Positions 3,708-44,537 of a DNA stretch of 64,000 bases are shown in pieces. The translations under genes were made by a program, and so were the position numbers. Positions within the stretch are counted from its first letter, which is position 1; each line of letters begins with the position of its first letter. Origin of the DNA: Haliotis cracherodii (Eukaryota); contig NW_027266297.1 in the NCBI RefSeq assembly GCF_022045235.1, forward strand, positions 43,152,001 to 43,216,000, written 5' to 3'. A model generated the notes under the pieces. The model was not told the origin of the DNA and did not search any database. It worked only from the letters and a program-made list of their open reading frames with translations.

Positions 3708-6700
3708 GATCCAGTCTCTAGTTTTGCAACATTGACTTTTTCAGGCATTGTGTGTTTTTTCCTCTTTGCTAGGGTACTGTTTTCATTCCCGAAGTAGTCC
3801 TTGTACAGGATGCTCATGGCCTCCTTGTCCTTCAAGGTCACTGCATGGTGCAGGGCTGTGGTTTCATCAGCGGTACTCCGATAATGGGAAAGCTGGAATG
3901 GTAAGCAAAGATATAATAAGCCTACAAACAATAATGCATTTTACATCAAATTGTCTTGCTACTGATTTGTTTTCTTACTAAGAGCTATAAGATATTCTAA
4001 ATTAACAGATATCCTATTTCAACAGTGTAAATTGTTACAAAACCAAGGTAAATTCAAAGCTCAATCCTCACATATCGAATCTTTTCTGTATCCTTGATTA
4101 ACTTCTTAAGCAGTTTGTAATCTTTCATTTGGACAGCTCGGAATACCAGCTTGGAGTGTGCATACTTGGACACAAAGGACACCGATTGGCTGCACAGGGA
4201 AAAAAGAACAGAAGGTTTTTTTCAGTTAACTTGTAACACAAATAAAGACATGATGAACATAATGCAAATGAACATAAGCTTGTTTCTTACTTTGTTTCAA
4301 AGAAAGGATCTTTCCTGTACACATGGACAGCAGGATTTGGATGTAGAGTCAGCTCATCAGGCTTTTTGGGGACTTTTCTCTTGCGCTCTGAAACAAAAAC
4401 CATCTGTAATTACTACTGGACTCAAGCCATATTTAATTTAATCATAAAGTGAAGAAATGTTCCTGACATAACGAGGAACTGGTACAAAGGCATACTGACA
4501 CAAGGAGGTATCGGTACAAGGAGGTACTAGTACAAGGAGAAACTGACGCAAGGGAGGAGTGGTATAAGGAGGTACTGACACAAGGAGGTATCGGTACAAG
4601 GAGGTACTAGTACAATGAGAAACTGACGCAAGGGAGGAGTGGTATAAGGAGGTACTGACACAAGGAGGTATCGGCATAAGGGGGTACTAGTACAAGGAGA
4701 AACTGATGCAAGGGAGGAGTGGTATAAGGAGGTACTGACACAAGGAGGTACAGGCACAAGGAAGGAGTGGTATAAGGAGGTACTGACACAAGAAGGAACT
4801 GATACAAGGAAGGAGTGGTATAAGGAGGTACTGACAAAAGGAAGGAGTGGTATAAGGAGGTACTGACACAAGAAGGAACTGATGCAAGGAAGGGGTGGTA
4901 TAAGGAGGTACTGACACAAGGAGGAGTGGTATAAGGAGGTACTGACACAAGAAGGAACTGATGCAAGGAAGGGGTGGTATAAGGAAGTACTGACACAAGG
5001 AGGAGTGGTATAAGGAGGTACTGACACAAGGAGGAGTGGTATAAGTAGGTACTGACACAAGGAGGAGTGGTATTAGGAGGTACTGACACAAGGAGGAGTG
5101 GTATTAGGAGGTACTGACACAAGAAGGAACTGATGCAAGGAAGGGGTGGTATAAGGAGGTACTGACAAAAGGAAGGAGTGGTATAAGGAGGTACTGACAC
5201 AAGGAGGAGTGGTATAAGTAGGTACAGACACAAGGAACGAATGGTATTAGGAGGCACTGACACAAGGAGACACTGATGCAAGGAAGGAGTGGTATTAGGA
5301 GGTACTGACACAAGGAGACACTGATGCAAGGAACGAATGGTATTAGGAGGTACTGACACAAGGAAGGAGTGGTATAAGTAGGTACAGACACAAGGAACGA
5401 ATGGTATTAGGAGGCACTGACACAAGGAGACACTGATGCAAGGAAGGAGTGGTATTAGGAGGTACTGACACAAGGAGGAGTGGTATAAGTAGGTACAGAC
5501 ACAAGGAACGAATGGCATTAGGAGGCACTGACACAAGGAGACACTGATGCAAGGAAGGAGTGGTATAAGGAGGTACTGACACAAGGAGGAGTGGTATTAG
5601 CAGGTACTGACACAAGGAGGAGTGGTATAAGGAGGTACAGACACAAGGAATGAATAGTATTAGGAGGTACTGACACAAGGAGGAGTGGTATAAGTAGGTA
5701 CAGACACAAGGAACGAATGGTATTAGCAGGTACTGACACAAGGAGACACTGATGCAAGGAAGGAGTGGTATTAGGAGGTACTGACACAAGGAGGAGTGGT
5801 ATTAGCAGGTACTGACACAAGGAGGAGTGGTATAAGGAGGTACTGACACAAGGAGGAGTGGTATTAGCAGGTACTGACACAAGGAGGAGTGGTATTAGCA
5901 GGTACTGACACAAGGAGGAGTGGTATAAGGAGGTACTGACACAAGGAGGAGTGGTATTAGCAGGTACTGACACAAGGAGGAGTGGTATAAGGAGGTACTG
6001 ACACAAGGAGGAGTGGTATTAGCAGGTACTGACACAAGGAGGAGTGGTATAAGGAGGTACTGACACAAGGAAGGAGTGGTATTAGCAGGTACTGACACAA
6101 GGAGGAGTGGCATAAGTAGGTACAGACACAAGGAACGAATGGTATTAGGAGGCACTGACACAAGGAGGAGTGGTATTAGCAGGTACTGACACAAGGAGGA
6201 GTGGTATAAGGAGGTACTGACACAAGGAGGAGTGGTATTAGCAGGTACTGACACAAGGAGGAGTGGTATTAGCAGGTACTGACACAAGGAGGAGTGGTAT
6301 AAGGAGGTACTGACACAAGGAGGAGTGGTATTAGCAGGTACTGACACAAGGAGGAGTGGTATAAGGAGGTACTGACACAAGGAGGAGTGGTATTAGCAGG
6401 TACTGACACAAGGAGGAGTGGTATAAGGAGGTACTGACACAAGGAGGAGTGGTATAAGTAGGTAAAGACACAAGGAATGAATGGTATTAGGAGGTACTGA
6501 CACAAGGAGACACTGATGCAAGGAAGGAGTGGTAAAAGGAGGTACTGACACAAGGAATGAATGGTATTAGGAGGTACTGACACAAGGAGGAGTGGTATAA
6601 GTAGGTAAAGACACAAGGAATGAATGGTATTAGGAGGTACTGACACAAGGAGACACTGATGCAAGGAAGGAGTGGTAAAAGGAGGTACTGACACAAGGAA

Positions 6701-9700
6701 TGAATGGTATTAGGAGGTACTGACACAAGGAGGAGTGGTATTAGCAGGTACTGACACAAGGAGGAGTGGTATAAGGAGGTACTGACACAAGGAGGAGTGG
6801 TATAAGGAGGTACTGACACAAGGAGGAGTGGTATTAGCAGGTACTGACACAAGGAGGAGTGGTATAAGGAGGTACTGACACAAGGAGGAGTGGTATTAGC
6901 AGGTACTGACACAAGGAGGAGTGGTATAAGGAGGTACTGACACAAGGAGGAGTGGTATAAGTAGGTAAAGACACAAGGAATGAATGGTATTAGGAGGTAC
7001 TGACACAAGGAGACACTGATGCAAGGAAGGAGTGGTAAAAGGAGGTACTGACACAAGGAATGAATGGTATTAGGAGGTACTGACACAAGGAGGAGTGGTA
7101 TAAGTAGGTAAAGACACAAGGAATGAATGGTATTAGGAGGTACTGACACAAGGAGACACTGATGCAAGGAAGGAGTGGTAAAAGGAGGTACTGACACAAG
7201 GAATGAATGGTATTAGGAGGTACTGACACAAGGAGGAGTGGTATTAGCAGGTACTGACACAAGGAGGAGTGGTATAAGGAGGTACTGACACAAGGAGGAG
7301 TGGTATAAGGAGGTACTGACACAAGGAGGAGTGGTATAAGGAGGTACTGACACAAGGAGGAGTGGTATAAGGAGGTACAGACACAAGGAATGAATGGTAT
7401 TAGGAGGCACTGACACAAGGAGGAGTGGTATAAGGAGGTACTGACACAAGGAGGAGTGGTATAAGGAGGTACAGACACAAGGAATGAATGGTATTAGGAG
7501 GTACTGACACAAGGAGGAGTGGTATTAGGAGGTACTGACACAAGGAGGAGTGGTATAAGTAGGTACAGACACGAGGAATGAATGGTATTAGGAGGTGCTG
7601 ACACAAGGAGACACTTTCACAAGAGGTACTAGTACAAGGAGGTAACGACACAAGGACCTACTTCCACAAGAGGTACCAGTACAAGGAGGTAACGACACAA
7701 GGACCTACTTCCACAAGAGGTACCAGTACAAGGAGGTAACGACACAAGGACCTACTTCCACAAGAGGTACCAGTACAAGGAGGTAACGACATACGGATGT
7801 CCTGTCAAAACGAGGTAATGGTAAAAGGAGTAACTGGTACTAAGGCGCTGGTACTAGTACACAGAAACTGATATTGGTACAGAGATACTGATACAGAGAT
7901 ACTGATGGTACACTGGTACATAAGTGTTGTGACAAAAAGAGAAAGCAAAATGACTCAGAAGATATCGTATTTTCTTGAGTCTAGTGTGCACTCTTTTCCA
8001 AAAATACAAAGCTGTGTAGAAGGAGGTGTGCATTATACACACAATAATGAGTTTTGATTGTCTTTTTTCCCCTAACACAAAGACATTTCCGTGAGCATGT
8101 AACACCGGAAATGCCATATCAACAAATCCATATTGGAGTACGCAAATGTAATCTTATAATTATGCAGTCTGGTTATTAAAAGTGTTCATTGTATATCTGG
8201 ACTTTGGACTGTTTGTAATCTATTTCATTAATTTTATCTATTTAGATTAATTTTGGTGAAATTGCGTGTGAAGCGGCCGGAAGATTGCATGACTCACTAT
8301 TATTTACAGCAACCACAGTCAGATTACCGTTATTGACGCCTTGAAACAAACTTTAGTTGATAGAGAATGGATACATATATCATGAATGCCACACTTTGAC
8401 TCGTAAAAAGTCATATTTGTTGTAGTTTGACTATTCTGTGTCAACATAAAGTTCTTGCGATCACGTGCGCGGGAGCCTCAACGGTGGCTGGTCAAATTGT
8501 TCCATGTCAAAAAAATATCCGGCCATAGTGATCAGCTGCACCGAAGTGCTATGCTTATGGTTATTAATGTTTTAAATATATATAGTAAAAGCTGCATCGA
8601 AAATAACACGATATTGGAAGATATTCTTCCTGACAAATTCCGATCATTGCATCAAAATTCTTTAAAGTTATATCATTGGGTAAGTTTTAACCATATCACC
8701 GGTAGATTCCAAGAAAAATGTTTGGACAGCTGATTGCTGTTTCCGGCTTGGGTAACGAGAAAATACACAAGGTAATCTTAATCTCTGCATGTGAATTAAT
8801 GCCTAGCAGGACAGAAAATATTATTTAAACTGTAAATCAACATGTCTGGTGATTTTTTATCTCAATTTTCAAATTCGTTTCTTATCACAGGTTCATTTAC
8901 CTGAATTCGCTGAAGGGGTACGGTGTAATTTTCTGCTGTGTATAATATTCAACAACAAATTTTCCAAAATACTGAATCCCCTAGAGGGGATGCGCATTAT
9001 ACTTTGGGGCACACTATACTCAAGAAAATATGGTATGTGTTCAGCGGAAATTCAACAAACATCACTGAAATAACAAAGAATACAATTTCACCTTTCTTTT
9101 CTTTTGGCTCTCTCTTCTTTTTCTCTCCAGGTGTTTTCTTAGACTTTGTTGACTTTTCTTTCTTCCCCTTTGTCTTTTCTTTCTTCCCCTTTGAAACTTC
9201 CTTGATCTTCTTCTCTATCTTCCTCTTCTTTTCTGGAGGTTCAATCTGCACAACTTCTTCAACTACAAGGGGAACATCACACACATGGTACTACAGACAA
9301 TAAGAAATGTTGCTTTTTCCTGGAAGACTAAGGGATTTTTAAAGTCAGTGTATTAAGGAGAGAACTCAAAATTCACTATGCACAGAATCATATACGACTG
9401 GTCGATTTGGGAAAATATTGATGTCAAAGTGAACATTACATTAATGTTGTTGACTATTATTCTAATAAATGTTAAGAAATCACAAAATATCTGGGCAGAC
9501 CTAGATGAAACAAATACAAAAAAACAACAGCATTAGTACCAACAATCTTCATGAGCATGATGAAAATGGTTAAAATGCAAGTGCTTAATAAAAAAATATC
9601 ATGACTCATGAAACACTGTCAATAAAATTTAGTTTGAATGACTTGAATCAAATTTGGCCAAGCCTCATATCTTTTTAACAACAAAGCAGTTATCTCCCCT

Positions 9701-12700: not shown

Positions 12701-15221
12701 GAGGTGTACTGGGGTTTAATGTCGCGTTTAAGATACTTATATAGCAACGAGCATGCATGTGAGTGTGTGTGTGGTTGCTTGTTCTATTCCAGACTAATGC
12801 CAATTTTACAGTGCTAGGCCAGTGAGATACCCCATTCAGACACAGTATACTGACTCTGTGTCGACCAGTTCTTGTTTTAACCCCTTAATGCCCAGCATCA
12901 GGCAGGGTAACAATAAGTACCATCTTCTAACATTTTTTCAAATGACGACTGCCGGGGATCGAAACCCCCGACTTCACTCTCTACAGGCAGATGCTCTACC
13001 AGACACTGACATTCTTTATTGTAAACGTCCTTTCGTACTCACTGACATTCGTTATTGTAAACATCCTTTCCCGCTCACTGACATTCTTTATTGTAAACGT
13101 CCTTCCGTGCTCACTGACGTTCTTTATTGTAAACGTCCTTTCGTACTCACTGACGTTCGTTATTGTAAACGTCCTTTCGCCCCCAAGGACTTTCATTATT
13201 GTAAACGTCCTTTCGTGCTCACTGACGTTCTTTATTGTAAACGTCCTTTCGTGCTCACTGATGTTCTTTATTGTAAAGTCATTTCTTGCTCACTGACATT
13301 CTTTATTGTAAACGTCCTTTCGTGCTCACTGTCAAACTTTATTGTAAATGTCCTTTCATGCTCAATGACATTCTTTATTGTAAAGTCCTTTCGTGCTCAC
13401 TGAATTTCTTTCGAACACATTGTTCTTTCTTTTCTTATGACATCTTTTCGTAACATTTGACTATTAATATTAATACTTTCGACCTTTATTTCAACTTTGT
13501 ATTTGTTTAACCTGCATCTGTTTGTTTTGTGTTTTGACCTTTATTAGTAACATTAAGTTCTTTATTCGCAATATTTGACCTTTATCGTGTAATTTTGTCC
13601 TTTTTTTTCAACTTTGTATTTTTTATAAAAAAAATGGCCGCCCATAAAGAGCACCTGATTGTCTTAAAAACGTTAAAAAATGCTACCATTTACTCACAAA
13701 TGAAGGAATCATGGCTGAAAAGGGTGGGGACAAAAGTCACCAATTCCAAAGAACTTTCCCCTTCAAATCTTCAACAAAAGTGTCTTAAATCTGAAATACA
13801 AAAGAAAATAAACATCTGTTATTTCATTGTCCTCTAGAACTTAAAACAACGGAAACAACTTATGCACAATATACAGTTAATAGCAATCATATACACATGC
13901 AGATATTTAATTCAGTAATTCAGGCTATTATGGCCCATTGTATATTTGTCTTACGTATATGAGTTAGTCACATGAATTTGTGAAACATTTTTACCTTGTA
14001 CGAAAAACATGTAAAATAATTGCAATACATTTTATTGCATCATCGTTTTTAGAATTGAGAAAAATGTTCATCATTTGCTTCTCTTTATGTTTTTGACACA
14101 ATTCAGGAAGATATGTTCTTCCAAGATGTTGATAACTATCACAAAACAATACAACATGAATTTCATCTTCGATAAACCCACTACAACATTGTGTACACAA
14201 TCTATAAACCTACTAGACTATGGAGGCGTTATGAATTGGCAAGGCTTGTGGAATACTTGCTAATGTTTGCAGCAATTACATCAAACACAGTCAGTCCTCT
14301 CTTTGATGACAAAAGTTCCATATTTGGTGCCAATGATTTACTAGGAGGTAGCCTTACTACCTCCTAACAAAACCTTGATGATCATTAATTATAACTACAA
14401 TCATAACCATTCCCAGTATAAACTCTTTGATATTTTGGTATTTCACTTGGCTTCAAAAGAGACAATATACAGATATAAGGTCTCTGACTTTGATATGACA
14501 AGCTTTGATAATTGTACTTGATAATAAATGCAGTATCACTTTTGAGAGTAATTTTTTTCTTACCTGAAAACAGATTTGATTTGATTGTATGTCAAAATAG
14601 ATTCCTAACATATTTCTTTGACAAGGAATATTAAGAATCTGCCACGGAGCTCCTTAGAAATTACTGAGGCCTAACAATCTTGAATCATGGCTTATTGCAT
14701 ACACGAACACCCTTCAACTGGAGTTGTGGCACCTATCACTGAAACCGGTGCAACAAAAGCCATGTTATCGGTTACCTGTACACAAAGTGACACACCCCCT
14801 CGAGGACAAAACTAAGGGACTACGCGATATCAAGCGAACGCTTAAATGCTAGATCAATTAACCTTTTCTAAACTGTTTTCCCGATTCAGTCGCCAGTAAC
14901 ATCTCATGAAATTAAGATCTGTGATACGTCGATGCAATGACAATGCATATTAACAACATATCAACGCCAAAGTGCGTTGACTACCGTTCCGAACGTTTCT
15001 GTCCGAGTTTTTACAAAATTGTGCCCAGCAGTTTGCGGAAGGGGACATATTTTGTGTATCAATGTCTTTCTGTCACTTACTTGCGTATGTTGATATTTGC
15101 TAAGTGTTGCATTTATATTTATGTATGTGTCTTCGCCTTACCTATTTTAGCTGTGTTTCGGTACACTCGCAATGAGAAAACACTGAGTGAGACACCGTCT
15201 CCGCAAAGCTTATACCTCCAT
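3708..15221 (-). CDS. 5' part of a multi-exon gene, probably an invertebrate ankyrin-repeat PARP (tankyrase/pme-5-like); continues beyond the window start
   Basis: Phase-compatible GT-AG exons: 15216-15221 (ME), 11329-11845 (VKRLSSR...TYVTVRNEE), 9704-9985 (GGWFLCRLRNNVY...KIRWLS...DYADEIDPGCIL), 9092-9262 (Lys-rich), 4291-4387 (LHPNPAVHVYRKDPFFET), 4072-4189 (SFVSKYAHSKLVFRAVQMKDYKLLKKLI), 3708-3892 (RSTADETTALHHAV, ankyrin-like). The exon structure is read from sequence. The family call is recalled similarity; no PARP domain is in the window. Confidence 0.75.
4480..7800. repeat. Intronic minisatellite with a ~31-bp core GGTACTGACACAAGGAGGAGTGGTAT(A/T)AG(G/C)A and longer variants, ending in a few copies of a longer unit
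   Basis: About 3.3 kb of direct tandem repetition, purine-rich on the + strand. Confidence 0.95.
10808..11302. mobile_element. MITE / non-autonomous DNA transposon with long imperfect terminal inverted repeats
   Basis: Left CAATGTCATTAAAATCAGATCTTAGTTTTCGCTACCGCTA...AAAGATCTGAGGACATCCCATTA is the reverse complement of right TAATGGGATGTCCTCAGATCTTTAGCGGTAGTGAGAACTAAGATCTGATTTTAATGAGATTG. Confidence 0.8.
12700..13002 (-). mobile_element. tRNA-derived SINE
   Basis: Reverse complement of the family at 46140: tRNA-like head GGTAGAGC...GGGTTTCGATCCCCGG and body GATGGTACTTATTGTTACCCTGCCTG. Confidence 0.7.
13003..13402. repeat. 36-bp tandem repeat CTCACTGACGTTCTTTATTGTAAACGTCCTTTCGTG, about 11 copies
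   Basis: Direct tandem repetition. Confidence 0.9.
13991..14215 (-). mobile_element. Non-LTR retrotransposon (LINE) ORF2 C-terminal remnant
   Basis: 'RLCTQCCSGFIEDEIHVVLFCDSYQHLG' matches the CxxC...EDExH...C..Y cysteine motif at the end of LINE ORF2. Confidence 0.6.
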
Positions 15222-17453: not shown

Positions 17454-19557
17454 CCTATGTGTATTTCAAGACCTGTAAATTACTCTTGAAAACAATGAAT
17501 TGTATACTCTGTTTTGCCATCAAACACCCTTCTCCTATGTAAGTACTCCTGGGAGAGAATGCCAGCTAAATCGTGCCGAATGTCATTACACTGTAGCAAT
17601 GCAATCCAAATCGGTCCTAGGGTTTCGATGTGTTTGACTTTGCAACTGCTGCATTAAACCTGATGCCTGCCGCCCATTATGTCTTTTTTTAAAAGATGTT
17701 TTGTGTGATATCGGTATACAGTTCCCCTGTTGTCCAAGAATCCGTTACGCGATGACGTCATGAGCCCTTTAGCACTGAGTAATTTAGACTGGTTCCCCTT
17801 CCTTCCTGCGTTCTTTGGAAAGTTGAGCAAGAGCAGCGACACCAAGCGGAGGATCCGGAAACCAGTCTATGAGTAATTATATACGTCAACGCCAGAGAAT
17901 AACCAGTTTCGATTATCCATTGGTCGTAAAAGGCAAAAAGTACTGACGATGCCACCCAAAAGTCAATTCCCTAAATTTCGGAATGAGTACGGTTGAAATT
18001 ATTTATAATGTCTTATGATAGAATGAGACGATGTGGGAATTAAAAATACACCAGTCCTGTTTTTCAGTCAAGAAATTCAATTCAGCTTCATACCCCGACC
18101 AACGGTTATTCTATGGTTGACGATTGGTTAACGAGATTGATAAACTTGCAACTTTTCTCGAGCCTTAAGTCTCTTCTGTTATTCATAAGATATCACATTA
18201 TTTCCTGGCAAAATTCCCAACCCGTACCCACAACCGCACCCACACCCATAGAGCATCATTAAAAAAGGGAGCAGGAACAAAACCATTTCACAAGCAAGGA
18301 AATGAATGATTGATAAGTTTATCCCTTGATTAGGATCACAAGGTGGAAGTCATCAATTATAGTCGTCAACCTCTGATGGATCACCTGTGATTATAAAGTA
18401 TCTACATGTGCATGATCAGGAAAGATATATAAGAGTATTTCCATCAAATTTCATTGCGGAGTGCAGCAAATTAGTACAAACACGGATAGATTTTTGATTT
18501 GCTGCTTATCAGTTCTCTCAGCAATATTTCAGCTGTATGACGACGGCCTGTGCCAGTGATTAACATTGTGAGCTACGTCCCGCGCCTTAGGAGTGAGTTA
18601 GTTAAAAATTAGCGTCGCGTCGGCATTATTTGAGCCATATAGCGACCCACGCCGTAGGAGAACGATGGTCAAACAAGTCACCGAACCTGACCACCCGATA
18701 AATTTAGTCGCTTCTTACGACTGGTATAGCTGCTATGAACCTATTCTACCCTGGTATTGTCATGGGTGTACATCCCTAGAGAATCAGGTATATCCACGAT
18801 CAATTGTGTGGATCGATGCTCATGATGTCAATCACTGGATTATTTCCAGACCGTCGCCATACAGCTGGTATATTGCTGAGTGCGGCTTCAAACAACAAAC
18901 AAACAGCATCAGGTATACGTATAGTAATATGTTTCGCATAGTCACAATTATTGGATGACCCAAAATATTAAAGTAGGGACGGTTTCAACATCACGAGAGC
19001 AAACACGACTCATTTATCCTTTTAGCAGTATCATTTCTGATATCTTTAGTAGCATCGTTGAATTGCTCGACATAGTTTTCTATATCAACCATCATGTCCT
19101 ATGTCCAATGAGTTCCACAACGCAATTAAAGAAACGCATAAACGAAACATTGATTTATTTCATTTTTATTTCGAACTGAGTCACCAACGGGTCATCTGTA
19201 AAAGAAAATGGAAAGGTTTATTTATCATTTCACCACTGTTTCGAGTATTTGACTGACATCTAGTATGTGGCATATAGCTTGCTAAGCACTAACATTAGTA
19301 CATGCGGGCATGGTGGGGTGCATTGCTTCTGGTGATAAAAGCTTGTAGCTTTGTTTATTAGATTTCAATTGAACAGAAATCAGAACGGTAGCTCCATATC
19401 AGTATCCGAACATCTTTATCGTTGGTAATTATTACACATATATATCCTTCGCCATGAAATATCATGTAAACAGATCAAAGAATCATACATAAAAAAGGGA
19501 ATTACAAGAATACAAATCTCACCTTGAGAACAAATCGGAGGGGGTGGTCGCCCTCTT

Positions 19558-20868
19558 TCAAAGACCACTGGCACCTGGTCCTTTGCCTTCGGGAGGTGGT
19601 GGGCATCCGGTTGGTGGTGGAGGGCGATCACCTTCCTGTGGTGCTTGTCTGTGTGGACGGGATTCACCTTCTGGAGGGGGAGGACATCCGGTTGGTGGTG
19701 GAGGACGATCACCTTCCTGTGGTGCTTGTCTTCGTGGACGGGATTCACCTTCTGGAGGGGGAGGACATCCGGTTGGAGGTGGAGGGCGATCACCTTCCTG
19801 TGGTGCTTGTCTTCGTGGACGGAATTCACCTTCTGGAGGGGGAGGACATCCGGTTGGTGGTGGAGGGGGGTCACCTTCCTGTGGTGCTTGTCTGCGTGGA
19901 CGGGATTCGCCTTCTGGAGGGGGAGGACATCCGGTTGGTGGTGGAGGACGGTCACCTTCCTGTGGTGCTTGTCTGCGTGGACGGGATTCACCTTCTGGAG
20001 GGGGAGGACATCCGGTTGGAGGTGGAGGGCGATCACCTTCCTGTGGTGCTTGTCTTCGTGGACGGGATTCACCTTCTGGAGGGGGGGGACATCCGGTTGG
20101 AGGTGGAGGGCGATCACCTTCCTGTGGTGCTTGTCTTCGTGGACGGAATTCGCTTTCTGGAGGGGGAGGACATCCGGTTGGTGGTGGAGGGGGGTCACCT
20201 TCCTGTGGTGCTTGTCTGCGTGGTCGGGATTCACCTTCTGGAGGGGGAGGACATCCGGTTGGTGGTTGAGGGCGATCACCTTCCTGTGGTGCTTGTCTTC
20301 GTGGACGGAATTCGCCTTCTGGAGGGGGAGGACATCCGGTTGGTGGTGGAGGGGGGTCACCTTCCTGTGGTGCTTGTCTGCGTGGACGGGATTCACCTTC
20401 TGGAGGGGTGGGAGGACATCCGGTTGGTGGTGGAGGACGGTCACCTTCCTGTGGTGCTCGTCTGCGTGGTCGGAATTCACCTTCTGGAGGGGGAGGACAT
20501 CCGGTTGGTGGTGGAGGGGGGTCACCTTCCTGTGGTGCTTGTCTGCGTGGTCGGGATTCACCTTCTGGAGGTGGAGGACATCCGGTTGGTGGTGGAGGGC
20601 GATCACCTTCCTGTGGTGCTTGTCTGCGTGGTCGGGATTCACCTTCTGGAGGGGGAGGACATCCGGTTGGTGGTGGAGGGGGGTCACCTTCCTGTGGTGC
20701 TTGTCTGCGTGGACGGGATTCACCTTCTGGAGGGGGGGGACATCCGGTTGGTGGTGGAGGGCGATCACCTTCCTGTGGTGCTTGTCTCCGAAAGCGAGAT
20801 TCTAGAAGAGGATAAGACCAACATGAAGCGACACAAGAGAGCGCCAGTAGCAGCAAGAAAGTCTTCAT
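19558..20868 (-). CDS. Gene A: secreted Pro-rich, single-Cys repeat polyprotein (436 aa; signal peptide, short propeptide, 15 x 27-aa units)
   Basis: ATG at 20868 in a CACC-ATG context, TATAAA at 20906-20911, signal peptide MKTFLLLLALSCVASCWS, propeptide YPLLESRFRR, units QAPQEGD(R/P)PPPPTGCPPPPEGE(S/F)RPRR, uninterrupted frame. A 3'-UTR intron (19196-19522) precedes a terminal exon with AATAAA (~19165-19170). Confidence 0.9.
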   Translation of the reverse strand: MKTFLLLLALSCVASCWSYPLLESRFRRQAPQEGDRPPPPTGCPPPPEGESRPRRQAPQEGDPPPPPTGCPPPPEGESRPRRQAPQEGDRPPPPTGCPPPPEGESRPRRQAPQEGDPPPPPTGCPPPPEGEFRPRRRAPQEGDRPPPPTGCPPTPPEGESRPRRQAPQEGDPPPPPTGCPPPPEGEFRPRRQAPQEGDRPQPPTGCPPPPEGESRPRRQAPQEGDPPPPPTGCPPPPESEFRPRRQAPQEGDRPPPPTGCPPPPEGESRPRRQAPQEGDRPPPPTGCPPPPEGESRPRRQAPQEGDRPPPPTGCPPPPEGESRPRRQAPQEGDPPPPPTGCPPPPEGEFRPRRQAPQEGDRPPPPTGCPPPPEGESRPRRQAPQEGDRPPPPTGCPPPPEGESRPHRQAPQEGDRPPPPTGCPPPPEGKGPGASGL

Positions 20869-22035
20869 GGTGAGAGTGATACTGTTGTCTCGGTACAACA
20901 CATCTTTTATACACATCCAGTCCAAGCCAGATGGCTCATTATTAACTCGCAGGAATTACTATTTATTCTGCATGTTTCGTTCTATTGTCATCCAAATAGT
21001 TTTGCTGATTGAAGTGGAAATGTGACTGGAATATGAAAAGTTGATTACTTTTGTGATTAGGATCTTATCTTAAGAGACAAATATCGAAAGATGCCATTTC
21101 TTCTGTGACAGTACTGCATTCATCACTTTGATTGAAAATCAATATTTCCTTCCAAAATGAAAATACTTATTAAAAGCCACATGTGCCATATTTGAGGATA
21201 CATTACGAGCAATAATTTAGGCTGAGAACAGAACAGTATGCTGTATACATCTCATTAACTCAAATGCAACATCATCTCTTTCTTTACAAAAGTGAACATA
21301 ATGGCAATTTCATGTTGGCCGCCATCTTGTCTTTACCGATTTTCGTTCTGTGAGGTTAGTTTTAGTTCAGTTATGTCAGGTGCACCTATCTGGAAGTGAA
21401 GGTTTACGCTAGATAACGCTGTATACACTTTTTGCATGTTTAATCGTTGATGTAGAATTATGCTGTAAATCCCATAATGCAAACTGACTGACGCCTCCAA
21501 TTCTGTACAGACAGATAGGACTGATCACATGAAGTAACATTTTGGCTTCATTTGCGAATAATTTACGAACTGATATATCTATGTTCTCTGTTTAAAAGTT
21601 ATGAACAATTTTGACAATTCTTTAATGACATTTGACTTCAAGTAAATACACAGCCTAGTGATGCTAGTGATCTCAAATGAAATGAACCTTGCTGGCAGAA
21701 GAGAGAAATTGGCAGCAACCTACATCGAGAATATCCATATGCCGTTTTATCTGTTTTATGCAAAGATTAATGCAATGTTTTTCTTGGCTGAAAGGACAAC
21801 GACTTTTTAAAAAGTAATTCTCTTACAACTAGCACAATGAGGCTATGAACTTATTTTACCTGGACTCCATGAAAAGCTGTGTAATCAGAAACTAAACAGT
21901 TACAATCTGCGAGTAGCGCAAGAATATCACGAAAGTATGCACTGCATGGAGTTGCGCATTCACCAAGTTTCAGCACTTCCGCTTAGAAAAAATGAAAGAT
22001 TTGTTTGCATGAGAAAGTTGTTTGTACAATCGTCA

Positions 22036-25804: not shown

Positions 25805-26308
25805 ATGAAGACGTTCCTGGTACTGCTGGCGCTCTCCTTTGTGGCCACATGTTGGTCTCAAGCACAACAGGACGGAGACCGCCCACTACCACCAACCGGA
25901 TGTCCTCCACCTCCAGAAGGTGAATCCCGACCACGCAGACAAGCACGACAAGAAGGTGACCACCCACCTCCACCAACCGGATGCCCTCCCCCACCTGAAG
26001 GTCAATCTGGCCCAAAGGAACAAGCACAGGAAGGCGACCGCCCTCCTCCACCAACCGGATGTCCTCCCCCTCCAGAAGGTAGAGAACAATCCCGACCACG
26101 CAGACAAGCACAACAGGAAGGTGACCGCCCACCACCAACGACTGGAAGTTCTCTCCTACCTGAAGGTCAATCTGGCCCACAAGGACAAGCACCACAGGAA
26201 GGTGACCGCCCACCTCCACCAACTGGATGCCCTCCACCTTCAGAAGGTAAAAGGCAAGGTGCTAGAGGTCCTGGAGGAAGAAGGCCACCTCCTCCACGCA
26301 GGAACTAA
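25805..26308 (+). CDS. Gene B: secreted Pro-rich Cys repeat protein, paralog of A (167 aa, 5 units plus a basic tail)
   Basis: Signal peptide MKTFLVLLALSFVATCWS, TATA 43 nt upstream, units ending alternately in SRPRR and SGPKE/SGPQG, tail KRQGARGPGGRRPPPPRRN. 3'-UTR intron 26321-26904, AATAAA at 26928-26933. Confidence 0.9.
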   Translation: MKTFLVLLALSFVATCWSQAQQDGDRPLPPTGCPPPPEGESRPRRQARQEGDHPPPPTGCPPPPEGQSGPKEQAQEGDRPPPPTGCPPPPEGREQSRPRRQAQQEGDRPPPTTGSSLLPEGQSGPQGQAPQEGDRPPPPTGCPPPSEGKRQGARGPGGRRPPPPRRN

Positions 26309-30125: not shown

Positions 30126-30656
30126 ATGAAGACATTGCTGATACTACTTGCGCTCTCCTTTGTTGCCACATGTTGGTCTCAAGCACCACAGGAAGGTGAC
30201 CGACCGCCTCCACCAACCGGATGCCCTCCCCCTTCAGAAGGTGAATCCCGACAGCGCAGACAAGCAGGACAAGAAGGTGACGGCCTACCTCCACCAACCA
30301 CATACCCTGCCCATCCTGAAGGTCGATCTGGCCCACAGGAACAAGAACCACAGGAAGGTGACCGTGCTCCTCCACCAACCGGATGCCCTCCCCCTCCTGA
30401 AGGTGAATCTGGCCCACAGGAACAAGAACCACAGGAAGGTGACCGTGCTCCTCCACCAACCGGATGCTCCCCCCCTCCTGAAGGTCGATCTGGCCCACAG
30501 GAACAAGAACCACAGGAAGGTGACCGTGCTCCTCCACCAACCGGATGCCCTCCCCCTCCTGAAGGTGAATCTGGCCCACGGGAACAAGCAACACAGGACG
30601 GTGACCGTCCTCCTCCACCAACCGGAGGTCTAATGAGTATGAAACACCGATTATAG
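30126..30656 (+). CDS. Gene C: paralog of A/B (176 aa as read), 3'-truncated by a foreign segment; may be a pseudogene
   Basis: MKTLLILLALSFVATCWS plus 5.5 units. Homology stops abruptly at 30626 (...PPPPTG) and the last codons (GLMSMKHRL) come from unrelated DNA. TATA at 30083-30088; the E-box reads CCTCTG. Confidence 0.7.
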   Translation: MKTLLILLALSFVATCWSQAPQEGDRPPPPTGCPPPSEGESRQRRQAGQEGDGLPPPTTYPAHPEGRSGPQEQEPQEGDRAPPPTGCPPPPEGESGPQEQEPQEGDRAPPPTGCSPPPEGRSGPQEQEPQEGDRAPPPTGCPPPPEGESGPREQATQDGDRPPPPTGGLMSMKHRL

Positions 30657-36455: not shown

Positions 36456-38103
36456 CATCCGGTTGGTGGTGGAGGGCCGTCACCTTCCTGTGGTACTTGT
36501 CTGCGTGGGCAAGATTCACCTTCTGAAGGGGGAGGACATCCGGTTGGTGGTGGAGGGCGATCACCTTCCTGTGGTACTTGTCTGCGGGGGCAGGATTCAC
36601 CTTCAGGAGGGGGTAGACATCCGGTTGGTGGCGGTCACCTTCGTGTTGTGCTTGTCTGCGGTTTTCACCTTCGGGAGCTGGAGGATATCCGGTTGGTGGT
36701 AAAAGGTGGTCACCTTCCTGTGGTACTTGTCTGTGTGGGCAGGATTCACCTTCGGGAGGTGGAGGACATCCGGTTGGTGGTGGAGGGCCGTCACATAACT
36801 GTTGTGTTTGTCTTCGTGGACGGAATTCACCTTCTGGAGGGAGAGGACATCCGGTTGGGGGTGGAGGGACGTCACCTTCCTGTGGTGTTTGTCCTCGTGG
36901 ACGGGATTCGCCTTCTGGAGGGGGAGGACATCCGGTTGGTGTTGGAGGGCGGTCACCTTCCTGTTGTATTTGTCCACGTGGGCGGGATTCACCTTCGGGA
37001 GGGGGTGGACATCCGGTTGGTCCCGGTCATCTTCGTGTTGTGCTTGTCTGCGTGAGCGGGATTCACTTTCTGGAGGGGGAGGACATCCGGTTGGTGTTGG
37101 AGGGCAGTCACCTTCCTGTTGTACTTCTCTGTGTGGGCAGGATTCACCTTCTTGAGGAGGACATCCGGTTGAGGTCGGAGGGCCGTCACCTTCCTGTGGT
37201 GCTAAGTACATACAAACCAACAGCATAGCGACATGTGAATAGCATAACTTTTGAGCTTGGAACTCTGGCTTACTCGCTTATTCTGCTAACTACGTAATGT
37301 CTCGCATGAATTAGTGATATTGCACGAGTTCGCTGTTAGCGGTATTAGTTTGTTGTTGTAGGCCGACATATTCCAGCTATATGGCGGTGGTCTGTACATA
37401 TTCGAGTCTGGATCAGGCAATCCAGTGATTGATATTACTAGCAAAGTCCCCCGCCATCAGAGCACGGTGACATATAATCAAACAAGTCACCGAACATGAC
37501 CATCCGATCCAATTTAATCGACTCTTACGAGTAGCAATACAATTCTTAGCACATGTCACGGAGTTTGATGTGGGAGGAAAGCTGGAAATGGTGCAGATCT
37601 TAGACGTTTATTATTTTCGTGATTCCTCGAAAACACCGATAGTCCTGACATCTATAATCATTATTCATTCACCTTCGGGAGGTGGAGGACATCCGGTTGG
37701 TGGTGGAGGGCCGTCACATATTGTTATGTTTGTCCTCGTGGACGGGATTCACCTTCTGGAGGGGGGGGGGGGGGGGGGGTGAGGGCACATCCGGTTGTGG
37801 GTGGAGGGACCTCACTTGCCTGTGGTGCTTGTCCTTTTACTGTCACCTTCCTGTTGTATTTGTCTGCGTGGGCAGGATTCACCTTCTGAGGGGGATACAT
37901 CGGGTTGGGGGTGGAGGGCCGTCACCTTCCTGTGGTGCTTCGCCGTGGACGGGATTCACCTTCACGAGGGGGAGGACATCCGGTTGAAGGGGGAGGGCCG
38001 TCACCTGACTGTGGTTCTTGTCTGCGTGGGCGTACTTCTAGAAGAGGATAAGACCAACATGTGGCAGCACAAGAGAGCGCCAGAGCGCCAGGAAAGTCTT
38101 CAT
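36456..38103 (-). pseudogene. Gene D: pseudogene of the gene-A subtype
   Basis: ATG AAG ACT TTC CTG at 38103 with a 1-nt frameshift in the signal peptide, propeptide WSYPLLEVRPRR as in A, degenerate frameshifted units, an interruption at ~37205-37665 and truncation at 36456. TATA at 38141-38146. Confidence 0.85.
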
Positions 38104-39811
38104 GATGAGAATGAGGCTGCTGTCTCGGCACATCATATCTTTTATACACTTCCAGTCCAAACCAGATGGCTCATCGTTAACGCACATTATTTGCTACGGA
38201 GCATGCCTGTTTCGTTGCATTGCCATTGAAATAGATTTCGTGATTAATAATGTGACTCACTTTAAATTGAAAATACAGAGTGTTGATTTATGTCTTATTT
38301 GGTCCTTTTAGAGAACAAATAGCGAAAGAGGCCATGTGTTCTGCGAATTACTGCATTCAACCTTTTAATTGAAAAGATAATATTGCCTTTCAAAGTACAA
38401 ACACTAATTAAAACGCCATATGTGCCTCTTTGAAAGGGGACCAAATTGTACGCAGTATCCATTTCAAAGTAATTGCTCAAGGTAGCTGGCGTTAGGTGTT
38501 GTACAGCCTTTGGACATAGTTTCATCACAGGAGTAGAATTCTTCTGTACAAATTGTCAGACTTCCCCAATGATGCAGTGACAGCTAGAACTTGTCATACT
38601 ATTGGAAATAAGCTGGTTTAGCAGAGGTACCGCTGTACACGACCAACCCACACAACAACACAAGACCTGAGTGAATCAACAGTCAGTTTATAAGACAGTC
38701 ACAGAATCTTATATATAATCAGTCAAATAGAAATGTTTACAATCAATATTTAGAGCATGTTTTTTGACAATCCGTTATAGAAGTACATATATGTTAAGAA
38801 CACCAGGTGAACATGATATAGAATCATTACACAAGATACATGCTACATTAGTAGTACATATTCCAAGGTACACAACGTACCACAGTTTACATGTGATTGA
38901 ATCTGGTGTACCCGATATACTCTAAGTAATGTATTACCCGAGTGGGCTTTCAATCACGATACATACAGTTCAGCTACAATACATATTCCAAAAGGTAAAC
39001 AGCGTAATACAGTTAACAGAATAGGCATAATCCTTACACAAAAGTAGTACAATGGGAATATCTAAGATATACACACACGTTACAGTTACCAATTACACTT
39101 GCAGGTAGTGCCAAGGGTAATAGCATACACTTAAGATTTAACATAGTACAACATTGCAACGTTTCTTACCTGTGTGAATAAAGAGTTAGTTTATTAGACA
39201 GCAACAGAACGATTTGTGACTGTCTGTCGTCCGTATTCATACCTATTCTAGATACTACAGATAATCTCTTTTACTGATTAAACTGACGTTGTTATTGGGA
39301 ATTTTAGTGGCGATATCTAGACAGAATTATATAATTAAGTTCGACCGAGGCATTAATGGTAAAGGTGTTTATGATTGAAGTTTAGTCAGAATAACTGTTT
39401 ACCTGTTGCTAGTATGCCACGAATGTACACGTGGTACGGGTGATTTGATAAGGGTGGATGATAAACAACTGTAGACACAGATAAAGATATTAATGTCTTA
39501 CATTTGTTTGCCTAACTCTGTCTGACCCATGAGAGATGCTGGTCCTGTCCGACATGGGTTATCGGGTTGACCCTTGGCAGTCTAAAGATGATGGAACGTG
39601 ATCGTTTGTTGTAATATTACCTTATTTCACAATTTCCAACTCTTAATGTGTGGCATTTAGAGTGATAAAATATTTGTCAAACTTTGTCCATTTCCCCAAG
39701 TTAATAATACAATGGCGAACGCGTGCATGAGATTAACAGAATGTACATCGCCTCTGAAAAAACATTGGGCCTCATATAATTTATTGATTTAAGAAGAATT
39801 TATAAACTGAT

Positions 39812-41905
39812 CCTAGGCTGTGCAGTAATTTCTTACAACGACAATGTGCAGACACACTGCTGATATTAGCCATTGTCATAGGCTGTGCAGTAATTTCTTA
39901 CAACGACAATGTGCCGACACACTGCTGATATAAAAGCGACTGTCCTAGGCTGTGCAGTAATTTCTTACAACGACAATGTGTCGACACACTGCTGATATAA
40001 GCCATTGTCATAGGCTGTGCATAATTTCTTACAACGACAATGTGCCGACACAATGATGATATAGGCCACTGTCCTAGGCTGTGCAGTAATTTCTTACAAC
40101 AACGATGTGCAGACACACTGATGATATAAGCCATTGTCATAGGCTGTGCAGTAATTCTTACAACGACAATGTGCAGAAACACTGCTGATATAAGCCATTG
40201 TCATAGGCTGTGCAGTATTTTCTTACAACGACAATGTGCCGACACACTGCTGATATAAGCCACTGTCATAGGCTGTGCAGTAATTTCTTACAACGACAAT
40301 GTGCCGACACACTGCTGATATAAGCCATTGTCACAGGCTGTGCAGTATTTTCTTACAACGACAATGTGCAGACACACTGCTGATATAAGCCACTGTCATA
40401 GGTTGTGCAGTAATTTCTTACAACGACAATGTGTCGACACACTGCTGATATAAGCCACTATAACAGGCTGTGCAGTAATTTCTTACAATGACAATGTGCC
40501 GACACACTGCTGATATAAGCCATTGTCATAGGCTGTGCAGTAATTCTTACAACGACAATGTGCAGAAACACTGCTGATATAAGCCACTGTCATAGGCTGT
40601 GCAGTATTTTCTTACAACGACAATGTGCCGACACATTGCTGATATAAGCCACTGTCATAGGTTGTGCAGTAATTTCTTACAACGACAATGTGCCGACACA
40701 CTGCTGATATAAGCCATTGTCACAGGCTGTGCAGTATTTTCTTACAACGACAATGTGCAGACACACTGCTGATATAAGCCACTGTCATAGGTTGTGCAGT
40801 AATTTCTTACAACGACAATGTGTCGACACACTGCTGATATAAGCCACTATAACAGGCTGTGCAGTAATTTCTTACAATGACAATGTGCAGACACACTGCT
40901 GATATAAGCCACTGTCATAGGCTGTGCAGTATTTTCTTACAATGACAATGTGCAGACACACTGTTGATATAAGCCATTGTCATAGACTGTGCAGTAATTT
41001 CTTACAACGACAATGTGCCGACACACTGCTGATATAAGCCACTGTCCTAGGCTGTGCAGTAATTTCTTACAATGACAATGTGTCGACACACTGCTGATAT
41101 AAGCCATTGTCATAGGCTGTGCAGTATTTTCTTACAACGACAATGTGCCGACACACTGCTGATATAAGCCATTGTCATAGGTTTGCAGTATTTTCTTACA
41201 ACGACAATGTGCCGACACACTGCTGATATAAGCCATTGTCATAGGCTGTGCAGTAATTTCTTACAACGACAATGTGCAGACACATTGCTGATATAAGCCA
41301 CTGTCCTAGGCTGTGCAGTAATTTCTTACAACGACAATGTGCCGACACACTGCTGATATAAGCCACTGTCAAAGGATGTGCAGTATTTTCTTACAACGAC
41401 AATGTGTCGACACACTGCTGATATAAGCGACTGTCATAGAATGTGCAGTATTTTCTTACAACGACAATGTGCAGACACAATGATGATATAAGCCATTGTC
41501 ATAGGCTTTGCAGTAATTTCTTACAACGACAATGTGCCGACACACTGCTGATATAAGCCATTGTCACAGGCTGTGCAGTATTTTCTTACAACGACAATGT
41601 GCAGACACACTGCTGATATAAGCTATTGTCATAGGCTGTGCAGTATTTTCTTACAACGACAATGTGTAGACACACTGCTGATATAAGCCATTGTCACAGG
41701 CTGTGCAGTATTTTCTTACAACGACAATGTGCCGACACACTGCTGATATAAGCCACTGTCATAGGCTGTGCAGTATTTTCTTACAACGACAATGTGCCGA
41801 CACATTGCTGATATAAGCCACCGTCATAGGCTGTGCAGTAATTTCTTACAACAACAATGTGCCCACACACTGCTGATATAAGCCACTGTCAAAGGATGTG
41901 CAGCA
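39812..41905. repeat. 65-bp tandem repeat GGCTGTGCAGTA(A/T)TTTCTTACAACGACAATGTGC(C/A)GACACACTGCTGATATAAGCCA(T/C)TGTCATA, about 32 copies
   Basis: Direct tandem repetition with period 65 (e.g. 40271 and 40336). Confidence 0.95.
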
Positions 41906-42440: not shown

Positions 42441-44537
42441 ATGAAGACGTTCCTGGTACTGCTGGCGCTCGCCTTTGTTGCCACATGTTGGTCGCAAACA
42501 CCTCAGAGTGAAGGCAAGCGCCCACTATCAACAACGAAACCGTCACCCCCTATAGAAGGTCAATCTGGTCCCGAAAGTCAAAGAGGCGAAGGACCACAAA
42601 GTCAAAGCGGTGAAGGACCCCAAAGAGGTGAAGGATCCCAAAGAGGCGAAGGACCCCAAAGAGGTGAAGGATCCCAAAGAGGTGAAGGATCCCAAAGAGA
42701 CGATGGACCCCAAAGTCAAAGAGGTGAAGGACCCCAAATAGGTGAAGGATCCCAAAGAGGCGAAGGACCCGAAAGTCAAAGAGGTGAAGGACCCCAAAGA
42801 GGTGAAGGATCCCAAAGAGGCGAAGGACCCCAAAGAGGTGAAGGACCCCAAAGAGGCGAAGGACCCCAAAGAGGTGAAGGACCCCAAAGGGGTGAAGGAT
42901 CCCAAAGAGGCGAAGGACCCCAAAGAGGTGAAGGATCCCAAAGAGGCGAAGGACCCCAAAGAGGTGAAGGACCCCAAAGGGGTGAAGGATCCCAAAGAGG
43001 CGAAGGACCCCAAAGTCAAAGAGGTGAAGGACCCCAAAGAAGTGAAGGATCCCAAAGAGGCGAAGGACCCCAAAGTCAAAGAGGTGAAGGACCCCAAAGA
43101 AGTGAAGGATCCCAAAGAGACGATGGACCCCAAAGTCAAATAGGTGAAGGATCCCAAAGAGGCGAAGGACCCCAAAGAGGTGAAGAACCCCAAAGAGGTG
43201 AAGGATCCCAAAGAGACGATGGACCCCAAAGTCAAAGAGGTGAAGGACCCCAAATAGGTGAAGGATCCCAAAGAGGCGAAGGACCCGAAAGTCAAAGAGG
43301 TGAAGGACCCCAAAGAGGTGAAGGATCCCAAAGAGGCGAAGGACCCCAAAGAGGTGAAGGACCCCAAAGGGGTGAAGGATCCCAAAGAGGCGAAGGACCC
43401 CAAAGTCAAAGAGGTGAAGGACCCCAAAGAAGTGAAGGATCCCAAAGAGGCGAAGGACCCCAAAGTCAAAGAGGTGAAGGACCCCAAAGTCAAAGAGGCG
43501 AAGGACCCCAAAGTCAAAGAGGCGAAGGACCCCAAAGTCAAAGAGGTGAGGGACCCCAAAGTCAAAGAGGCGAAGGACCCCAAAGAAGTGAAGGATCCCA
43601 AAGAGGCGAAGGACCCCAAAGTCAAAGAGGTGAAGGACCCCAAAGTCAAAGAGGGGAAGGACCCCAAAGTCAAAGAGGCGAAGGACCTAAAAGTCAAAGA
43701 GGCGAAGGCCCCCAAAGTCAAAGAGGTGAGGGACCCCAAAGTCAAAGAGGTGAGGGACCCCAAAGTCAAAGAGGTGAAGGACCCCAAAGTCAAAGAGGTG
43801 AGGGACCCCAAAGTCAAAGAGGCGAAGGACCCCAAAGTCAAAGAGGGGAAGGACCCCAAAGTCAAAGAGGTGAGGGACCCCAAAGTCAAAGAGGTGAGGG
43901 ACCCCAAAGTCAAAGAGGTGAGGGACCCCAAAGTCAAAGAGGTGAGGGACTTCAAAGTCAAAGAGGCGAAGGACCCCAAAGTCAAAGAGGGGAAGGACCC
44001 CAAAGTCAAAGAGGTGAGGGACCCCAAAGTCAAAGAGGTGAAGGACCCCAAAGTCAAAGAGGTGAAGGACCCCAAAGTCAAAGAGGTGAGGGACTTCAAA
44101 GTCAAAGAGGCGAAGGACCCCAAAGTCAAAGAGGGGAAGGACCCCAAAGTCAAAGAGGTGAGGGACCCCAAAGTCAAAGAGGTGAAGGACCCCAAAGTCA
44201 AAGAGGTGAAGGACCCCAAAGTCAAAGAGGCGAAGGACCCCAAAGTCAAAGAGGGGAAGGACCCCAAAGTCAAAGAGGTGAGGGACTTCAAAGTCAAAGA
44301 GGCGAAGGACCCCAAAGTCAAAGAGGTGAGGGACCCCAAAGTCAAAGAGGTGAGGGACCCCAAAGTCAAAGAGGTGAGGGACCCCAAAGTCAAAGAGGTG
44401 AGGGACTTCAAAGTCAAAGAGGCGAAGGACCCCAAAGTCAAAGAGGGGAAGGACCCCAAAGTCAAAGAGGTGAGGGACCCCAAAGTCAAAGAGGTGAGGG
44501 ACCCCAAAGTCAAAGAGGTGAAGGACCCGAACTTTGA
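42441..44537 (+). CDS. Gene E: secreted Gly/Gln/Glu/Arg/Pro/Ser repeat protein (698 aa) with the family's promoter and signal peptide but a different repeat
   Basis: MKTFLVLLALAFVATCWS, one degenerate ancestral unit (QTPQSEGKRPLSTTKPSPPIEGQSGPE), then ~650 aa of QRGEG(P/S) hexamers and QSQRGEG(P/L) octamers in an unbroken frame. TATA at 42398-42403, AATAAA at 44605-44610 and 44614-44619. Confidence 0.9.
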   Translation: MKTFLVLLALAFVATCWSQTPQSEGKRPLSTTKPSPPIEGQSGPESQRGEGPQSQSGEGPQRGEGSQRGEGPQRGEGSQRGEGSQRDDGPQSQRGEGPQIGEGSQRGEGPESQRGEGPQRGEGSQRGEGPQRGEGPQRGEGPQRGEGPQRGEGSQRGEGPQRGEGSQRGEGPQRGEGPQRGEGSQRGEGPQSQRGEGPQRSEGSQRGEGPQSQRGEGPQRSEGSQRDDGPQSQIGEGSQRGEGPQRGEEPQRGEGSQRDDGPQSQRGEGPQIGEGSQRGEGPESQRGEGPQRGEGSQRGEGPQRGEGPQRGEGSQRGEGPQSQRGEGPQRSEGSQRGEGPQSQRGEGPQSQRGEGPQSQRGEGPQSQRGEGPQSQRGEGPQRSEGSQRGEGPQSQRGEGPQSQRGEGPQSQRGEGPKSQRGEGPQSQRGEGPQSQRGEGPQSQRGEGPQSQRGEGPQSQRGEGPQSQRGEGPQSQRGEGPQSQRGEGPQSQRGEGPQSQRGEGLQSQRGEGPQSQRGEGPQSQRGEGPQSQRGEGPQSQRGEGPQSQRGEGLQSQRGEGPQSQRGEGPQSQRGEGPQSQRGEGPQSQRGEGPQSQRGEGPQSQRGEGPQSQRGEGLQSQRGEGPQSQRGEGPQSQRGEGPQSQRGEGPQSQRGEGLQSQRGEGPQSQRGEGPQSQRGEGPQSQRGEGPQSQRGEGPEL

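Follow-up and report, generated by a model that had tools for sequence, protein, structure and literature searches.

A candidate abalone polyprotein gene predicted to release many copies of an acidic, single-cysteine peptide from a conserved-leader gene family

Gene A and its repeat units

Gene A lies on the minus strand of the window (the whole 64-kb stretch of Haliotis cracherodii DNA that was analysed) as one open frame of 436 codons running from 20868 to 19558. Re-translation bore out the anatomy described in an earlier, sequence-only reading, namely a leader closed by RFRR, 15 units with their linkers, Gln starts and a lone Cys. The leader measures 28 amino acids. Its first 18 codons (20815..20868, minus strand) form a signal peptide by sequence and hydropathy, opening with MK, passing through a hydrophobic core of 13 residues and closing in C-W-S, with small residues at −3 and −1; the translation continues with a 10-residue propeptide (20785..20814, minus strand) made up of YPLLE and SRFRR, which holds the first convertase-type site and ends the leader. 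Units 1–14 follow (19648..20784, minus strand), each of 81 nt except unit 5 with 84 nt, and the frame closes with unit 15, the tail GKGPGASGL and the stop codon (19558..19647, minus strand), an end that is seen both in the translation and in a probable RNA contig of a related species (species B).

At the protein level 13 of the units are 27 amino acids long, unit 5 is one residue longer (28) and unit 15 carries the 9-amino-acid tail. RPRR closes 13 units and RPHR one (unit 14); counted over the whole protein there are 14 convertase-type sites of the form R-X-[KR]-R and one R-X-H-R, all positioned precisely at unit borders. Gln is the first residue in 14/15 units, with Arg in its place in unit 5, and every unit (15/15) harbours exactly one Cys inside PPPPTGCPPPP, i.e. 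between two tetraproline runs. Tandem Repeats Finder described the array as 14.8 copies of an 81 nt period with 93% matches, and reported no indels. Two types of unit alternate, GDR...ES and GDP...EF (R8/S23 versus P8/F23); six units encode the exact predicted 25-mer, which contains 10 Pro, and the other units are one to three positions off. Because the units were copied from one another recently, their similarity inside gene A does not count as independent evidence, and the 15 sites carry the weight of only a few separate observations.

Several frames of the array are free of stops, so that openness of the frame alone is weak evidence; the coding frame was identified from the leader, the TATA box and the pattern of synonymous changes. 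AlphaFold, run on the single gene A sequence, placed its one helix in the signal peptide and left the rest without structure (mean pLDDT 48), which fits a chain that would be extended and disordered beyond the signal helix.

Paralogues within the window and two types of linker

Four paralogues of gene A (B, C, D and E) are present within the window, of which D is a decayed pseudogene. Gene B (25805..26308, plus strand) encodes 167 amino acids in five units, with RPRR after units 1 and 3 and SGPKE or SGPQG otherwise; gene C (30126..30656, plus strand) encodes 176 amino acids in six units, with RQRR after unit 1 only and SGPQE or SGPRE otherwise. Each of these two proteins has four Cys. Pseudogene D (36456..38102, minus strand) is the nearest kin of gene A and shares the plan of its propeptide (YPLLE followed by VRPRR); it carries a leader frameshift caused by a 1-nt deletion, stops, an inserted block of ~460 nt (~37210–37670), and linkers that have eroded to RPRG, CPRR and CPHR through Arg-to-Cys or Arg-to-Gly changes. 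Gene E (42441..44537, plus strand) combines an A-type promoter and leader with a 698-amino-acid protein containing ~80 octapeptides of the QRGEGPQS type; it has neither Cys nor RxxR, and a Pfam scan of it gave no match. Ahead of the octapeptides, the N-terminal segment of gene E resembles a degenerate, Cys-less unit.

The basic linker (SRPRR or SRQRR) and the SGPQE type (with its variants SGPKE, SGPQG and SGPRE) differ at 6–7 of 15 nucleotides and, judging from the sequences, both are old. Genes A and D use the basic linker exclusively, whereas in B and C it follows unit 1 (in B also unit 3) and is replaced elsewhere by neutral or acidic linkers. Because a basic linker stands after unit 1 in A, B and C, all three would release a near-identical first 25-mer, which gene A multiplies. 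The arrangement in front of unit 1 also varies. A pentapeptide, YPL(L/Q)(E/D), follows the leader in A, D and a distant set of genes described below, and, being common to all of these, is ancestral; in A and D there follow a linker-like SR(F/P)RR and then unit 1, while in B, C and E the pentapeptide has been deleted and unit 1 stands directly behind the signal-peptidase site. With RxRR before unit 1 in A and D, or the signal-peptidase site in B, C and E, every intact gene would expose an N-terminal Gln.

The window also contains four non-coding satellites: a 31-bp unit extending over 3.1 kb with a strong G and A skew (4502–7610), a 36-bp unit in 11 copies (13004–13411), a 65-bp unit in 32 copies (39806–41903) and a 20-bp unit in 17 copies (57321–57654). 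A GC-rich block on the minus strand (319–2708) contains overlapping ORFs of ~200 amino acids that by eye resemble the remnant of a retroelement or recombinase and for which a Pfam scan returned only a sub-threshold DUF7807; besides gene E, eight ORFs of the window were scanned and gave nothing useful.

A promoter and leader cassette at sixteen or more loci

When the gene A protein was compared with its own genome, the matches were confined to this cluster and the remainder were compositional. The promoter and leader module, by contrast with the cargo, is found at at least 16 loci of the genome, and the signal peptide is conserved in the paralogues and across these loci. Eight tandem genes with the gene A promoter and leader are spaced ~6–7 kb apart on another contig (C13:7476708-7521319, loci L028-L037; L037:269-1939). 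These are the genes that share the pentapeptide with A and D; they encode ORFs of ~556 amino acids built from GPGGPEGPGGQERQ repeats (43% Gly, 23% Pro), and a Pfam scan of one of them returned no useful match. R-X-X-R sites were found neither in these eight genes nor in gene E. Three further, dispersed cassettes (L038, C45:24.298 Mb; L039, C45:7.175 Mb; L040, C34:12.806 Mb) have decayed, showing premature stops, a frameshift or mutation of the TATA box. The cargo behind the cassette has thus been swapped wholesale, and consists of Cys units, QRGEGPQS units or GPGG units.

Two other loci of this genome point to an abalone: a pair of tandem molluscan haemocyanin genes with eight functional units each (C78:7546637-7622521), and Egg_lysin exons of the lysin/sp18 type (C7:25190671-25249396). 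Families of arthropod cuticle proteins and of sea-urchin bindin were looked for in the genome and not found, nor was COX1 or a mitochondrial contig.

Gene signals and selection

On the minus strand a TATAAAAG box (20904..20911) is located 43 nt 5′ of the gene A ATG and is the same in 5/5 paralogue promoters, and an AATAAA poly(A) signal (19354..19359) lies ~200 nt 3′ of the stop codon. The proximal 170 nt of the promoter and the leader can be aligned over the five copies A–E in the window, with the TATA box and its surroundings invariant.

Comparison of unit 1, including its RxRR and Cys, gave dN/dS values of 0.16 (A–B), 0.07 (A–C) and 0.22 (B–C), at dS of 0.34–0.50. For A versus C the Fisher p was 3e-4 with unit 1 and 3e-5 with leader and unit 1 combined. 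The Cys codon and the linker Arg codons show synonymous changes only between the paralogues. By this codon analysis unit 1, together with its RxRR and its Cys, is under purifying selection across the paralogues. Pseudogene D serves as a control for decay, as it has lost both frame and sites, whereas the 1.3 kb repeat of gene A stays in frame despite a 3-nt insertion. The TATA box, signal peptide, poly(A) signal and selection all indicate that gene A is a real gene, and a functional, single-exon abalone gene is the best explanation for the locus.

Relatives and expression

Most of the gene region of the window was recovered in nine DNA-type sequencing runs of the same species, and parts of the gene A stretch were present in runs of other species (coded B, C and D). 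In species B and C, DNA contigs extend from the promoter through the leader into the first units, with ~98% identity over promoter and leader, a species B contig differing from gene A at 6 of 343 letters. RFRR is intact in both of these species, with one synonymous change in a species C contig. Differences in the unit codons of the relatives are nearly all R8/P8, S23/F23 or synonymous, as within the array itself, and a minor D7N unit variant occurs in species C and D; in the RPRR and Cys codons of these contigs no changes other than synonymous ones were found.

Two runs of probable RNA type (species B and D; the type is a guess) contain units at high depth and leave the promoter uncovered. One probable RNA contig joins a unit to the tail, stop codon and 3′ flank that belong to gene A itself, and another bears the SGPKE linker of gene B. 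The 84-nt leader (window 20785–20868) is uncovered by the probable RNA contigs of these two related species, possibly through a 3′-biased library or through a break in assembly at a leader that is present at many loci. Three runs from the source species that are probably RNA contained no gene A words, and expression, if real, would therefore be restricted to a tissue or stage.

Searches for homologues

A Pfam scan of gene A returned no families at E ≤ 1. A phmmer search against 1.84 billion representatives gave only six weak compositional matches, the best at 2.9e-10 with 22% identity, and no homologue; word-index protein searches with the full gene A protein and with its first 82 residues found no match. 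Repeats of the collagen or extensin kind were also sought, and the gene A unit has no uninterrupted Gly-X-Y or Ser-Pro(n) and no match to Pfam Collagen. By exact look-up the protein collection contains none of the proteins of genes A, B, C and E, and it appears to be without abalone gene models; since the window's own proteins are missing from it, the lack of relatives there is weak evidence and says little on other molluscs. The literature searched yielded no description of the family, and its unit, leader and repeat motifs were in none of the paper texts covered. Taken by sequence, the locus seems to be restricted to abalone.

Predicted processing and product

The sequence-only reading had proposed that gene A encodes a furin-type polyprotein. 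That gene A is a secreted, disordered polyprotein of this type, releasing many copies of one acidic peptide, is the interpretation we favour, at somewhat better than even likelihood. The sites themselves, convertase P-domains (PF01483) found above cut-off at at least five genome loci in a profile search, and the selection on unit 1 speak for it. Among known furin substrates, ADAMTS4 (RPRR) has Pro and Notch1 (RQRR) has Gln at P3; O-glycosylation of Ser or Thr near cleavage sites, on the other hand, could block cutting. For the chemistry of processing there are published precedents in human salivary pro-proteins (PMC10454625) and in abalone FITZAP (PMC6952181). The proposal is nevertheless weaker than first stated, because most genes of the same cassette have no basic sites, the linkers of B and C are mostly of the SGPQE type and the uncut chain is balanced in charge; the products stand as predictions.

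The processing steps that we infer would begin with removal of the 18-residue signal peptide from the precursor. Furin-type proprotein convertases of the trans-Golgi or of secretory granules would then cleave on the C-terminal side of RFRR and of every RPRR or RPHR, a carboxypeptidase of the D/E type would trim the exposed Arg residues back to Pro, and the new N-terminal Gln would cyclise to pyroglutamate. The predicted output is ~14 acidic 25-mers in two main variants (R8/S23 and P8/F23), along with a 29-mer from the last unit and the short propeptide. Calculated monoisotopic masses of the two main pGlu forms are 2575.18 and 2576.16 Da, and a disulfide dimer of the main form (2575.18 Da) would have a mass of 5148.34 Da. 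Side-chain charge ranges from −2 to −3 over the predicted peptides; the net charge of about −2 given previously holds for side chains alone and becomes about −3 once pGlu and a free C-terminus are counted.

With both ends blocked and a high proline content, such a peptide should resist proteases. Its thiol would be positioned between two extended tetraproline segments and, as the only one in the chain, could pair only between chains, i.e. in a dimer or a mixed disulfide. Exact sequence and not only composition has been kept between old paralogues (dS near 0.5), from which specific partner binding may be suggested; we tentatively place the action of the peptide there rather than in a bulk material.

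The main competitor is that the gene A protein stays largely uncut, as a charge-balanced, Pro-rich polyampholyte with 15 thiols forming a cross-linked network in mucus, adhesive, egg coat or matrix, with RPRR serving as a charge block. We regard this as unlikely but worth serious weight. The A-type promoter and leader do stand before the eight 556-amino-acid GPGGPEGPGGQERQ-repeat genes and the 698-amino-acid gene E, from which basic sites are absent; the full gene A pro-protein has 60 acidic versus 56 basic residues, so that Arg could serve charge patterning; and SGPQE-type linkers keep stretches of several units joined in B and C. Yet at dS of up to 0.5 A and D still have RxRR ahead of unit 1, and A, B and C still have it behind that unit; conservation of exact sequence is unusual in bulk materials, and the gene A motifs are missing from the supplements of the H. 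laevigata shell proteome (6.2 million characters searched). Further, convertases readily cut R-X-R-R where it lies exposed in disordered proteins of the secretory pathway, as the salivary pro-proteins illustrate (PMC10454625).

It is highly improbable that gene A is an apidaecin-like, multi-copy precursor of a Pro-rich antimicrobial peptide: although it has the same architecture, and apidaecin was the closest ESM-Atlas cluster (score 0.85, a lead only), neither Pfam Apidaecin (PF00807) nor any other family was matched, and the predicted product is acidic where such peptides are cationic and Arg/Pro-rich, a distinction that the sequence-only reading had drawn correctly. Equally remote is a non-functional or unexpressed frame, with a minisatellite expanding in a dying gene copy, since the stop-free repeat in several frames, the decay of neighbour D and of three distant copies and the absence of its words from the three same-species probable RNA runs are set against an intact leader, TATA box and poly(A) signal, 1.3 kb free of frameshifts, purifying selection against the paralogues, and units with the 3′ tail at high depth (promoter uncovered) in runs, probably of RNA, from two related species.

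If the peptides released from the favoured polyprotein are real, abalone would make large molar amounts of an undescribed type of acidic, end-blocked peptide with one thiol between polyproline rods. The family is a natural experiment in which one promoter and leader cassette is fitted with exchangeable repeat cargoes, and a two-state linker would free or join the units. Abalone are raised in aquaculture, and some of their species are endangered; a lineage-specific secretory family with high expression could matter for their mucus, feeding, reproduction or disease.

Comparison with known systems

The architecture of gene A is already known from other systems; the predicted peptide, the linker with its two states and the family built on one cassette are novel variations on it. 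Conotoxins and frog skin peptides are secretory gene superfamilies with a conserved leader and a variable cargo. The abalone family is like them in that promoter and signal sequence are common to at least 16 loci and the cargo has been replaced; it differs in that the cargo consists of tandem low-complexity repeats and not of folded, Cys-rich toxins.

Insect apidaecin precursors (PF00807) have, like gene A, a signal peptide, many tandem copies of a short Pro-rich sequence and basic release sites. Apidaecins, however, are cationic and Cys-free, and are separated by dipeptidyl spacers, whereas the predicted gene A peptide is acidic and has one Cys; membership of gene A in this family was rejected on the unmatched PF00807 HMM, despite the ESM Atlas lead. 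From the same genus, FITZAP (sp6) is, like the predicted gene A product, a small, anionic, disordered secreted peptide, and its observed masses in red abalone fit processing by furin and carboxypeptidase B (PMC6952181). FITZAP was also rejected as the identity of gene A, as both gene structure and sequence differ: it is encoded by two exons as a single peptide with a poly-Asp tract, and it lacks Pro-richness, repeats and homology to gene A.

Human salivary proline-rich proteins (PRB/PRH) are alike to gene A in being secreted, disordered, Pro-rich tandem repeats encoded in a tandem gene cluster. No homology to their products was found by the Pfam scan or by phmmer against the 1.84 billion representatives. 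Processing of their pro-proteins involves cleavage at R-S-X-R by convertases in the Golgi or in granules, which goes to completion in the basic class, then trimming by carboxypeptidase, and an N-terminal pGlu on many products (PMC10454625). In the salivary Pa isoform a Cys replaces the Arg of the site, and the protein is left uncut and forms a disulfide dimer (PMC10454625), which parallels the cut and uncut linkers and the lone Cys of the abalone family. The salivary products are 40–150 residues long, basic or in the form of N-terminally acidic phosphoproteins, and have no regular Cys, in contrast to the predicted 25-mer of gene A with its fixed Cys between tetraprolines.

A broader and decidedly speculative proposal, which we think improbable as a whole, is that linkers code the thiols per chain throughout this Cys-unit branch, cuttable SRPRR versus uncuttable SGPQE-type linkers setting one in A, one to three in B and C, and none in E. 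On this view gene A would turn out large amounts of a monovalent PPII-Cys-PPII peptide, proof against proteases, which either forms dimers that act as a specific ligand or serves to cap or tune an extracellular network of disulfide-linked chains; the branch as a whole would be a convergent and more regular counterpart, in a kelp-grazing mollusc, of the human salivary proline-rich proteins.
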